From NCBI RefSeq assembly GCF_026571515.1, contig NW_026865611.1, forward strand, positions 62,001-126,000: a stretch of DNA of 64,000 bases. The letters run 5' to 3'. A model generated the notes under the pieces. That model was not told the DNA's origin. It did not search any database and saw only the letters and a list, made by a program, of their open reading frames with translations. Positions 11,725-16,173 of this stretch are shown one piece after another (the first letter of the stretch is position 1; the number at the start of each line of letters is the position of its first letter). Both the position numbers and the translations under genes were made by a program. The stretch is from Ruditapes philippinarum (lineage: Eukaryota).

Positions 11725-14700
11725 ATGGCCGACCAACAGCCAGATGGATCTCCTAGAGAACGCCGTCGAAGCCGGAAACAAACGATTTTGTCACAGGGCC
11801 CGCCGGAATTTGCGTCCATTTCAATCGACGGTGATAAAAATGTTCCTGTTGCTGACACAACTGATTCCGAAACAGATGACTGCGTTTTTAAAGATAATTT
11901 AACAGACAATGCATGCGAAATTTCATATGATGAAAGTCATTCTAAAGAAGTAAACGACGCTAAACAAGAGAATCACGAACACGCAGCCACTAAAATTGAA
12001 AATGACATAATCAGTAAAAAGAATGAGGTTCCGGATATTGTTTACGATGAAACAAAACCAAAAAGGCTTTCGCACAATAGGCCTCAGAAATTAGACTTAG
12101 AAAGTCACAGTTCTAATACTTTACATGAGACTATAAATTTTCTTATATCCCCAGATGATAGCCCAACCAGAAGGAAAAGACGGGCTCTAAATACAGTGCG
12201 ATCAGAGCCAACAATCGGGAACCACAGTAACGATTATAATCATGAAGCACTTGACAGTCATGCAAGAGAAAATCACCGAAAGCATGATACTGATCCGAGG
12301 AGTAAACAGATGCAAACGTTGAAACAAACACATTACGAACAAAGTCCTGAAAGTACTCGGAGAAAGGTATCATCACCAGTACAAAGACTTATGGTAAAGA
12401 ACAGTGCTCTAGCGGCTGCAGCGGCAGCAAATAGCAAAGACCGAAAAGGTTCATCAGAAGCCAGACAAACGAACAACGCAAATTTTGTCTATGTTGGACC
12501 AAGACGTAAGATTTCGTCCGATGCTAGACTAGAACATCGTCATATAGAAGAAAGCCTTTCCCTTCCAACAAAACAAATGCCAAAAAGAAAGGTCTCATTC
12601 GATACAAGTGCGTTAGTTAATGGAAACAAGATTATGCCATTAAACGATGAACCAATTTTGAAGGAAAAACCAGAACATATCATAGAAGAAATATCCGAGC
12701 CTCAAGCAGAATATGGTGTTGATGAGGAAAGCATCAAAGAAAGTCCTAGGCTTGAAATTAAGATCCCAAAAGTCATCTTTACAAGCGATGATGATGAAGG
12801 TTTTGTTCAAAATGAAAGGGAAAGTCCGAGAAACGACGAGAGTGTGAGCGAGAATAGCGAAGAAGGTGAGGATGGCTATGCTAGTGGTTGTGATAACAAA
12901 GCGTACGTGAGAGACGAAGATGAACATGTACAATCTAACGGATCACTGGATACAACCAATGAAAGATTTACAAATTTTCAAAGTGAGGCTCATAGTAAAC
13001 GAGGGCGGCGTCTTTCACCAATGTCGGCTCAATCATACACATTTGAAGAAGCTGCTGTCATTCCACATATGAATGTGGATCATTTAACAATGGATAGAAG
13101 TGTTTCAACTGGTTCGATTGGCTCCTACAGTGGAAGACGTATATCAGCATACGACGACCAATCTCCACCAAAGTCAATTTTAAAAACGAGACTTGAAGAT
13201 GCAGAATCCGTGAATTCCGAGATCTCTGTCAAAAACTTCAAAGTCAGGAAAGATTCCATTGCCTTGTTTATGGACCAACATGGTGAAATAGCTATGCAAG
13301 AGTTAATAAAACAGCATGATGAAAAGTTCAAATGCTTTGGAAAAGACGATATTAAACAGGTAATTTGACAATTATGCTTCATTTAAATGGAAGGTATATA
13401 AGATATAATGAATACAGATGTCAAATTGATGAATGCTTGTCTATAGGTCAGACAATTGTGTATAAGTAATACATGCTCTTGGTTTAAACTTATTTATTTA
13501 AGCTCGATTGCGAAACAAGTTCTTGCAACTTATTTTAATCAAGTCCGCTTCTTGGAACAAACCAGTACTGGTGTCATATGAAGAAACATGGTCGTGACCC
13601 GTTTAGGGCTCGAACCCATGATCCTTTGGTTGCGAGGCAGACACCTTGACCGCTAGGCCACCTCTCCTCTTATATGTTAACTTGAGTGCAAAACAAAGAT
13701 GTTATTCATTGATAAGTGTCTAATGGGAACAGAACAAGGTCTGTCTGTATAAATATTGATTTACAAACAAAGAGTCAAATCAAGTACTCATGAAACCAGG
13801 ACAATTTGAGAAAATTTAATTCATTGCAAGTAAATCGTTAAGTAAATGTATTTAGAAAGAAACAGTGTTAACTTATAGCTGGCTTTTATTTACTTAAGTC
13901 CCAGTTAGTTCTATCATAACTTGCAAATGTGGGGTATATGATGCCATTCCATTTCATTGCAACTAATTTGAGTTCATCTCAGTTATACATGAACATATTG
14001 GAAATGATACTGTCGTCACTAATATCTTTGACAAAAATTGAAAAAAAAACACCGATAATAATGTATAATTTAAACAATACATTTGAGTATTCATATAAGT
14101 ATCCACCATTTTTTAACTTGTTGACTTTCTCTTCTATTTCAGCTTTGGGAAAACCGTAAAATGCTTTTGGAAAAGTACAAACTTCACTTACTAGTTCTTA
14201 CACTATTCCTACTGACCTTCTCCTTCGTAATAGTGGGGTTACATTTCCACAGCGAGCATCATAAAAAGATGGCCTCTTCTCAAAAGGTTTTCTTTGATGC
14301 AAAGCTGAAAACGTTAACGCTTAGTGATACAGAAAACTGGGACACATTGACAGGGTCGTTAGGTTTAGATATACCTTCATGGAAGATGCCAATACATTGT
14401 TATCCTAATTACAAGAAGATCATGGATAAAACTTGTTTGAAATGGAAAGAACACGGTCAGTTGGATATTGCTTATTTCATCAAGAACAACACACAATGCT
14501 ATAATATAACTTGGAATCTGTTACCAGGAACTTCCGCTTATGACTGTTACGAGATAGGAGGTAGAAGCTGGTACGGACCTTTAAACATGACAAAATCACA
14601 ATGGCCAATCAAGTCAAATCCTTTTAGCTTTACTGTTAGTAAGTCAAAACACCATGGAAGTGGCACGTTTTCGTCGGCTGTGGAATATTATTGGTTGTCG

Positions 14701-16173
14701 TCACGGGGCGAGGCGGTAGTTGTCGATTCGAACTTCCCATTAGAAGTTAGTTGGAACAAAAAGAAACCAGGCTCTTTTTGTGCAATAAGTAAGCGTTCTG
14801 GGGATTTCTACAGCAAAACAGTAACAGCAAAACGTACATTTAGCTACTCAGTTTGCAATGGAATAGATATTCAAACCACGCATGCGCTGATCAGAGAGAG
14901 GTTTTATCCTGCAATTACTAGCTTACCAGATAGACAATTCTTAGAGAATCCTCACTGGTCAACAGTAGCAGATTCCGATGATTTTCGTCTAAATGATACG
15001 GTCGTGTACAATGTTGCCGACGCTATAAAAAACAATAACCTCAACTGTAGTTCTATGGAATTAGACGGGCAATGGGAACACAGATACGGGGACCTAACTT
15101 TTAACCCAAAATTGTTTACAAACATGTCTGACCTTGTTCTTCATGTTGCTAATGCAGGTTGTGAGATATCGTTAAACGTTCACCCTTTCTTTAGCTTCCA
15201 TTCAGTAAATTTTATCGAAGGGATGAATAGAGAATATTTTGTGGAGGATGCAGGTGGGACTGTCCCTGCTCTTCTAAAATGGGAGCATGGAGTTGGTGCT
15301 ATGTTAGATGTTTCGAATCCTGCGGCTCGTGATTGGTATGTGGGTAAGATCAGGAGAATTTCTTCTAAATACAATATTGATACGTTCCGTCTAGTGTATG
15401 GGACCTCCGCATGGGTTCCAAAGAATCCGGTATTTCACAACGACGGTATAAGTCCAACAAAGGTTAAGCTATTGTTTTCTGATTTGATGGCTTCTTTGGG
15501 GAATGTTGTTCTTGAAAGCACATCTCAGTCACAGCATTTGTCCACTCTGGTTGGAATTTCATCTTCTGTTGTCACTTCAGGTGACAAATTTTGCCTGAAA
15601 AATATAATACCGGAAATACTTAATTTAGGTCTTATGGGCTATCCATTTGTCTTATCAGATGGGTTTGATATCGATGACAAACACAGAAACAATGATGATT
15701 TTATACTTCCGAGCAGAGATCTTTATATTCGATGGATGCAGCTTTCGGCATTCCTTCCAGCTGTTAGATATACCGTAAAACCTTGGTCGTATGACGCCAA
15801 AGTTATTGAGGCCTCAAGGAATCTCACAAAATTTCATAGCGATGTCGTTCTTAATACTATATTCAAAGCAGGTGAAGACATTCTCAAAGGTTCTCCAGTT
15901 GTTCAACCCATGTGGTGGAATCGGTCAAATGATAAGAGGACATTTTTAATCGATGATCAGTTCGTTTTAGCCGACAAGATCTTGGTGGCGCCAATTTTGT
16001 GTGAGTGTCATATAGATGAAGATTTAGCGGAAAGAGACATTTATGTTCCAGAGGGAGTGTGGAAGGATGCCAGTCACGACAAGGTTATCATTGGACCAAG
16101 ATGGATAAAGAATTATAAAGCTAAACAGTTTGAAATTCCGTATTTTGAAAGAATGTCAGAAGCTACATATTGA
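11725..16173 (+). CDS. MYORG: MYORG-like (KIAA1161/NET37) glycoside hydrolase family 31 type II membrane protein, 1221 aa, exons 11725-13359 and 14143-16173; probable pseudo-enzyme
   Basis: Acceptor ttcatttaag| at 11690, phase-0 donor AAACAG|gtaatt at 13359 and acceptor ctatttcag|CTT TGG at 14143 join the 547-aa and 670-aa ORFs in frame. TM helix LLVLTLFLLTFSFVIVGL. GH31/MYORG motifs: EYYWLSSRG, PHWST, YGDLTFN..LF, LDVSNPAARDWY, LGLMGYPFVL, LYIRWMQLSAFLP, DDQFVLADKILVAP, RDIYVPEGVW. The symbol denotes family similarity, not proven orthology. Confidence 0.88.
13481..13667 (-). mobile_element. tRNA-derived SINE (family S1, Meta-like core) in the MYORG-like intron
   Basis: Minus strand GGTGGCCTAGCGG (A box)...GGGTTCGAGCCC (B box), core CATATGACACCAGTACTGGTT..CCAAGAAGCGGACT; highly similar to 51558-51752. 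Confidence 0.8.

Follow-up and report, generated by a model that had tools for sequence, protein, structure and literature searches.

Can an animal keep the whole fold of a glycosidase on a membrane anchor after the catalytic residues have been lost, and what would such a protein be used for? This question is raised by a gene of the Manila clam Ruditapes philippinarum that lies in a 64,000-nucleotide stretch of DNA (RefSeq assembly GCF_026571515.1, contig NW_026865611.1, positions 62,001 to 126,000 of the forward strand), referred to below as the window. The gene, RefSeq LOC132729744, has two exons and encodes XP_060571556.1, an 'uncharacterized protein' of 1221 amino acids related to the human glycoside hydrolase family 31 (GH31) enzyme MYORG. 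MYORG is the product of a primary familial brain calcification disease gene, but what it acts on naturally and what it does in the cell have yet to be established (PMC9491548). The clam protein is probably best explained as an ancient, conserved transmembrane pseudo-glycosidase acting as a scaffold or receptor, with a tail that in bivalves may recruit protein phosphatase 1 (PP1). The ectodomain is encoded by an open frame of 670 codons at 14161-16173 (+ strand), and the domain residue numbers used here (V412, S468, etc.) refer to this open reading frame (ORF), the ATG of which corresponds to the internal Met552 of the 1221-residue protein. The frame is open throughout, as the sequence-only reading of the window had described it, but it is not the whole protein and represents only the exon 2 part of it.

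The fold of the ectodomain was assigned using profile, sequence and structure comparisons. Pfam searches detected the GH31 triosephosphate isomerase (TIM) barrel PF01055 (E 3e-25, 89.7 bits against a cut-off of 23.5) and the GH31 C-terminal domain PF21365 (E 1.7e-14, 54.5 bits against a cut-off of 24.4). A search of the PDB gave 47 GH31 matches, the best being human MYORG (7QQF/7QQH, E 1e-89), with an identity of about 30% over 556 residues. The AlphaFold2 model (predicted local distance difference test, pLDDT, 79.6; predicted template modelling score, pTM, 0.79) also has MYORG 7QQF as its best Foldseek match (template modelling scores of 0.78/0.84 over about 650 columns), ranking above bacterial GH31 alpha-galactosidases. 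The closest sequence and fold, the single N-terminal transmembrane helix and the grouping with MYORG-like proteins in trees all place the clam protein in the MYORG-like subgroup. A protein atlas search confirmed the family and nothing beyond it. Its ectodomain consists of the following parts:

14293-14925, + strand: N-terminal beta-sheet domain, ORF residues ~45-255, delimited with AlphaFold2 secondary structure, the Foldseek alignment and conservation counts; it contains the conserved cysteines C80, C92, C113, C129, C207 and C232 and the sequons N115 and N142.
14992-15834, + strand: GH31 (beta/alpha)8 barrel with an insert region, ORF residues 278-558, from PF01055 and the MYORG alignment.
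15889-16152, + strand: GH31 C-terminal (proximal) beta-sandwich domain, ORF residues 577-664, from PF21365.

In MYORG, D463 is the nucleophile and D520 the acid/base, and in every GH31 member characterised so far, the Asp of beta4 serves as the nucleophile (PMC9491548). Both residues were claimed to be missing from the clam protein, and the alignment bears this out. MYORG FKFDAGE aligns with clam FRLVYGT, and the acid/base segments (QSQNISCFFRLVDRDS vs. QSQHLSTLVGISSSV) place a serine at D520; no Asp or Glu occurs within residues 410-414 or 466-470. The alignment with MYORG is gap-free from clam residue 302 to about residue 450, which sets D463 opposite V412. The spacing between the QSQ and GYPF anchors is 41 residues in both proteins, which sets D520 opposite S468 and R517 opposite G465, so that the conserved Arg is now Gly, as had also been noted. 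The acid/base column is marked directly by the D520N mutation in 7QQH. The reported changes of EIDD to ELDG (D302-G303) and of LPDM to LSDG are likewise found in the MYORG alignment. Conservation counts, here and below, refer to 46 members of the mollusc clade that includes the clam protein (clade A), 11 members of its sister clade B and 47 active-looking relatives. The catalytic positions are as follows:

15394-15396, + strand: V412, nucleophile position (MYORG D463), codon GTG.
15562-15564, + strand: S468, acid/base position (MYORG D520), codon TCT.
15064-15069, + strand: D302-G303, MYORG D353 kept and D354 changed to Gly; D in 42/46 and G in 42/46 members of clade A.

The loss extends to the sugar-binding site. 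Ten ligand contacts are listed for MYORG (PMC9491548), and their counterparts in the clam protein are:

D213: probably Ser, in a low-confidence loop; replaced.
W321: V269; replaced.
D353: D302; kept.
D354: G303; replaced.
W426: E375; replaced.
K461: R410; conservative change.
D463: V412; replaced.
R504: E452; replaced.
R517: G465; replaced.
D520: S468; replaced.

Eight of the ten contacts are thus replaced, and only those of D353 (D302) and K461 (R410) are retained, which makes canonical alpha-galactoside binding unlikely as well. On this evidence, the clam domain is predicted to be unable to work as a retaining glycosidase, and its non-catalytic status appears well supported. The possibility of an active enzyme that was merely misaligned was rejected, as both motif regions align gap-free between identical anchors.

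The protein could still be an enzyme if catalytic residues had been relocated or a different chemistry had arisen in a remodelled pocket. The pocket is lined by a conserved rim (D302, E306, D500, Y413, H459, E/Q375 and E/Q/D452), and some ligand-directed function is therefore likely. However, a strictly conserved carboxylate has not appeared at any new position: at 375, 19 members of clade A have E and 16 have Q, and at 452, E occurs in 26, Q in 8 and D in 6. Moreover, the position at the end of beta4, where characterised GH31 enzymes all have the nucleophilic Asp (PMC9491548), is hypervariable and occupied by small residues. A retained or novel enzymatic activity is accordingly regarded as very unlikely. 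The neighbours of the variable nucleophile position are themselves conserved in clade A (R410 in 37/46, Y413 in 42/46 and G414 in 42/46), as are the pocket motifs D-G, F-R-L-x-Y-G and S-D-G, and the impression is of a pocket that has been remodelled and kept, not of one in decay.

Sequence searches returned 18 relatives at first and then more, down to about 31% identity. Orthologues were found in Mercenaria, Mactra, Mya, Dreissena, Sinanodonta, Ylistrum, Solemya, Haliotis, Lottia, Nucella, Bradybaena and Octopus. A metagenome scan with an alignment query added one orthologue with 59% identity (L010); a first scan with a single-protein query gave no match. None of the 46 clade A members has acidic residues at or near both catalytic columns. 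The acid/base residue is absent from all of these orthologues, with S in 26, T in 13 and A in 4 members of clade A, and the nucleophile column is hypervariable (A in 11, T in 10, S in 9, V in 7, and others including G and N).

In a tree of 170 rows, the clam protein falls within a clade of 57 rows that has no canonical member. The relationships were resolved further in an IQ-TREE phylogeny of 53 rows rooted on bacterial GH31, in which clade A is represented by 16 rows; the clam paralogue L005 was left out of the trees. Within clade A (Shimodaira-Hasegawa-like approximate likelihood ratio test, SH-aLRT, 94), cephalopods branch first, followed by gastropods plus bivalves, which is the species tree. 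The sister dead clade B includes the clam paralogue L004, a scallop, a snail and Octopus; clades A and B together have a support of 100, and active sequences are basal. This topology indicates that the catalytic loss is derived and older than the A/B duplication, which is itself older than the split of the three mollusc classes. Members of clade A have a mean pairwise identity of 0.41, as against 0.40 for the active group, and by this measure clade A is apparently evolving at a rate similar to that of its active relatives.

The claim that a catalytically dead GH31 protein has been kept for a non-enzymatic role is upheld by these results: the residues are lost, yet the protein is conserved in bivalves, gastropods and cephalopods, no clade A member keeps both aspartates, the topology follows the mollusc phylogeny and the Ruditapes copy is not neutral. 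Molluscs have kept the pseudo-glycosidase for more than half a billion years without catalytic residues, which points to a job that is probably non-enzymatic. The loss of catalytic residues could also suggest a decaying pseudogene or a neutral duplicate. This explanation is scarcely credible and is ruled out by the intact frame of 1221 codons with RefSeq support and by the intact orthologue frames, with species-tree topology, in three mollusc classes. In comparison with L010, the nonsynonymous distance (dN) is 0.32 with the synonymous distance (dS) saturated, so that omega is not computable; this value also speaks against neutral decay.

Further features are shared within the dead clade. Altogether, 64 positions are at least 93% identical in clade A. 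Each of the sequons N115, N142, N321 and N554 is kept in 34-43 of the 46 members and ten cysteines are likewise conserved, as would suit a domain in the lumen or outside the cell. Two of the cysteines form a pair specific to the clade:

15592-15594, + strand: C478, which together with C614 (nucleotides 16000-16002) makes up a clade-specific cysteine pair.

C478 lies just past the former acid/base strand and C614 in the C-terminal domain. Each is present in 46/46 members of clade A, C478 in 11/11 and C614 in 10/11 members of clade B, and neither in any of the 47 active-looking relatives. By these counts, the dead lineage can be recognised from its C478/C614 pair. Taken together, the analyses show a conserved, glycosylated and disulfide-bonded GH31 fold that lacks the catalytic machinery and is carried on a single-pass type II anchor.

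In MYORG, dimerisation is obligate and involves F402, V406, L419, L422 and I429 (PMC9491548). The clam protein has hydrophobic, conservatively kept residues at the equivalent positions (F351, M355, V368, L371 and V378), with F351 in 44/46, V368 in 42/46 and L371 in 41/46 members of clade A. The clam genome also has at least three active-looking MYORG-like paralogues, L002 (G000:C8155), L003 (G000:C9209) and L006+L009+L008 (G000:C4788); L002, L003 and L006 carry EIDD, FKFDAGE and, where read, LPDM. Both observations would suit a regulatory dimer partner, which would form a heterodimer with an active-looking paralogue via the insert-region interface and control its activity, location or stability. 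However, the interface fits a homodimer equally well, and the conserved remodelled pocket and transmembrane helix would be left unexplained; this role is considered unlikely. Where the clam protein has its long tail, L006 begins with a signal-peptide-like segment, and it spans at least three exons. Two more clam paralogues are non-canonical, namely L004 (G000:C1706), which belongs to dead clade B and shares the C478/C614 pair, and L005+L007 (G000:C3691), in which the nucleophile motif of L005 reads LRLINEV.

Among 176 aligned family members, 103 lack both aspartates, 50 have both and 22 have the nucleophile only; the set comprises the 150 best cluster representatives and the earlier matches, ranked by similarity to the dead query, and the proportions are biased accordingly. 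Fish MYORG is canonical. The arthropod proteins P0116 (Rhodnius), P0183/P0277 (Diamesa) and P0107 (Tachypleus), named 'myogenesis-regulating glycosidase', lack the acid/base Asp and EIDD, and the insect members P0116 and P0183/P0277 keep the Asp of the nucleophile column. These non-canonical arthropod lineages are separate and lie outside the mollusc clade. Literature searches on GH31 pseudoenzymes, the MYORG subfamily, KIAA1161-like proteins and SITS-binding protein found no paper on molluscan or inactive MYORG relatives. The protein was thus proposed with reason as undescribed, being 'uncharacterized' in RefSeq; however, it belongs to a widespread set of non-canonical MYORG-like lineages and is not a one-off.

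The organisation of the gene was established by comparing the exons separately with database proteins, with XP_060571556.1 (database entry P0035) serving as the full-length sequence:

11725-13359, + strand: exon 1, the 545-codon N-terminal cytosolic tail; 100% identity to P0035 residues 1-545.
13360-14142, + strand: intron, phase 0, 783 nucleotides, with GT...AG boundaries.
14143-16173, + strand: exon 2, encoding residues 546-1221 and the stop codon, from the juxtamembrane segment and transmembrane helix through the complete GH31 ectodomain; 100% identity to P0035.

The donor of exon 1 is CAG|gtaatt, and the acceptor of exon 2, tttcag|CTT at 14143, is in phase and lies six codons 5' of the ATG at 14161. 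The start of 14143 given in the sequence-only reading is therefore this splice acceptor. Gene calls of several other species include an intron read-through ending in ...FQ directly before the L/I-W position, which is consistent with a shared intron position. In several species, intron-less Logan contigs of about 4 kb encode both the tail and the GH31 domain, and these are best read as mRNA. The intron holds a dispersed repeat of about 150 bp (at about 13530-13680) with a tRNA-like T-arm motif; at least 1948 candidate genome copies with 86-91% identity characterise it as a SINE-like (short interspersed nuclear element) sequence. Neither ARAGORN nor Rfam called a tRNA or RNA family in the intron.

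The membrane anchor is encoded near the beginning of exon 2:

14182-14244, + strand: single transmembrane helix LHLLVLTLFLLTFSFVIVGLH, type II signal anchor; hydropathy maximum in every orthologue.

The helix directly follows the tail in every orthologue and is near-invariant among bivalves, with the tail only about 26% identical. A type II architecture with an inert glycosidase-like ectodomain and a helix so unusually conserved relative to the tail would be expected of an ancillary 'heavy chain' of a transporter or channel, as in CD98hc and rBAT; the helix would then pack on a polytopic partner, which the ectodomain would stabilise or help to traffic. The scallop (Ylistrum balloti) orthologue P0064 is called 'SITS-binding protein-like' by NCBI, which could point in the same direction. 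However, this lead is an automatic name only, no juxtamembrane Cys is present and the first conserved Cys (C80) comes about 50 residues past the helix. Such a role is judged distinctly improbable.

The tail of 545 amino acids is of low complexity, with 68% S/T/P/E/D/K/R/Q/N/G, and contains ten basophilic R/K-R/K-x-S/T sites; no Pfam domain was found in this exon 1 product. Conservation is concentrated in the islands YDETKPKRL, LISPD, RRKISSDARLE, KRKVSFD, GCDNKAY, PKSILK and VRKDSIALF. Three of these deserve attention:

12583-12603, + strand: KRKVSFD, RVxF-type PP1-docking motif, tail residues 287-293.
13174-13185, + strand: SILK motif within the conserved PKSILK, tail residues 484-487.
13243-13269, + strand: VRKDSIALF with an RKDS phospho-site consensus, the most widely conserved tail island, found from Ruditapes to Solemya, Ylistrum and Haliotis.

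In the alignment, each of the 10 heterodont/pteriomorph-like bivalve tails has [KR]VSF at the position of KRKVSFD, with variants in Sinanodonta, Ylistrum and Solemya. SILK is kept in 10 bivalve orthologues and reads SIMK in Ylistrum. With KRKVSFD and SILK both conserved in bivalve tails, the protein has the RVxF docking motif of PP1-interacting proteins and may bind PP1. The tail of scallop P0064 has four RVSF/KVSF motifs. The idea of a scaffold coupled to a cytosolic phosphatase, put forward in the sequence-only reading, thus gains support at the level of sequence motifs in bivalves, but does not extend to octopus and some gastropods, where these motifs are absent.

The explanation preferred here is that of a type II single-pass glycoprotein with a disordered tail of 545 amino acids, one helix and a MYORG-type GH31 domain facing the lumen or the cell exterior. 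It would have arisen from active MYORG-like ancestors before the cephalopod/gastropod/bivalve split and would have been under purifying selection ever since. For the ectodomain, a role in binding or scaffolding is proposed, probably as a dimer, as in MYORG. In bivalves, the tail may recruit PP1 via KRKVSFD and SILK, with phosphorylation by basophilic kinases possibly controlling the recruitment. In this way, the protein would couple an interaction in the lumen or outside the cell to dephosphorylation in the cytosol. Taken alone, a dimeric scaffold or receptor with a PP1-recruiting bivalve tail is a tentative proposal, possible but doubtful.

Several points weigh against this explanation. The RVxF and SILK motifs are missing in Octopus, Nucella and some other clade members, the tails of which are much shorter; PP1 docking is therefore not an ancestral function of the clade and, if real, is a bivalve elaboration. 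Both motifs are short, about 0.3 chance RVxF matches are expected in a tail of this length, and SILK lies C-terminal to RVxF, opposite to the usual order. The loss of activity is itself deduced from the sequence. P0054 has an Asp (FRLDYGS) and P0004 a Glu (FRLEYGS) at the nucleophile column, both without the acid/base residue, which fits free drift at this site rather than regained activity. The superposition on MYORG consists of sequence and Foldseek alignments, not residue geometry, and pLDDT is only 54-66 in several pocket loops of the model. Finally, the complex prediction for a homodimer (two copies of residues 240-670) had a score of 0.00 and carries no weight either way.

As this ancient conserved dead relative shows, the MYORG fold can be selected for a use other than catalysis, and the clade offers a natural 'catalytic-dead' comparator for MYORG. 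It is also a warning for annotation, as the Octopus and Haliotis orthologues are named 'myogenesis-regulating glycosidase(-like)' and the family name is no proof of activity. Membrane pseudo-glycosidases such as Klotho and CD98hc are already known; one derived from GH31/MYORG and conserved across molluscs is a new form among them. The bivalve tail with its conserved PP1-type motifs provides a concrete membrane-scaffold hypothesis. In a broader and rather remote version, the mollusc clade would function as a signalling receptor or ancillary subunit, its remodelled, acid-rich GH31 pocket binding a non-glycoside ligand or a partner protein in the lumen or outside the cell and the bivalve PP1 tail transmitting the signal, and it would be part of a large, so far unrecognised family of MYORG-derived transmembrane pseudo-glycosidases in molluscs and, in other forms, in arthropods. 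If that were true, such proteins could be relevant to how shell-forming animals control the deposition of calcium salts, a link suggested by the brain calcification that MYORG loss causes in humans.

Among known systems, human MYORG (KIAA1161/NET37; GH31 alpha-galactosidase; 7QQF/7QQG/7QQH) shares with the clam protein the N-terminal beta domain, the barrel with an insert, the proximal beta-sandwich, the type II topology, the N-glycosylated lumenal domain and the hydrophobic residues at the dimer-interface positions of the insert region. The clam protein differs in having no equivalents of D463 and D520, in its tail of 545 amino acids as against a short tail before MYORG residue 80, in the extra conserved pair C478/C614 and in its placement in a separate mollusc clade, with canonical MYORG-like genes in the same genome. 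A Torpedo SITS-binding protein was reportedly isolated on a column with an anion-transport inhibitor, and the name of the scallop orthologue implies that it is a MYORG-family relative, which is an annotation lead only. With regard to the tail, the PP1 regulatory subunit PPP1R3A/GM has the RVxF docking motif RRVSF. Clam KRKVSFD fits RVxF, its Ser sits inside a basophilic kinase site as in GM, and SILK is also present; however, there is no homology beyond the short motifs, SILK comes after RVxF and not before it, and docking is a prediction. CD98hc (SLC3A2) and rBAT (SLC3A1), type II membrane proteins whose GH13-like ectodomain is catalytically inert, have, like the clam protein, a cytosolic tail, a signal-anchor helix and a dead glycosidase TIM barrel with a beta-sandwich. 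Unlike them, the clam protein belongs to GH31 and not GH13 and has no Cys between the helix and C80 that could serve as the juxtamembrane Cys by which such heavy chains are disulfide-linked to a light chain, and so does not have the mark of a heavy chain. The classic animal pseudo-glycosidases are the Klotho proteins (GH1-like) and the chitinase-like lectins (GH18-like). Their folds and families are unrelated to that of the clam protein, Klotho is type I, the chitinase-like lectins are soluble, and in the clam protein the sugar contacts are also largely replaced; what they have in common with it is a glycosidase fold kept after the loss of the catalytic carboxylates, which in Klotho and the lectins has been reused for binding or co-receptor roles.

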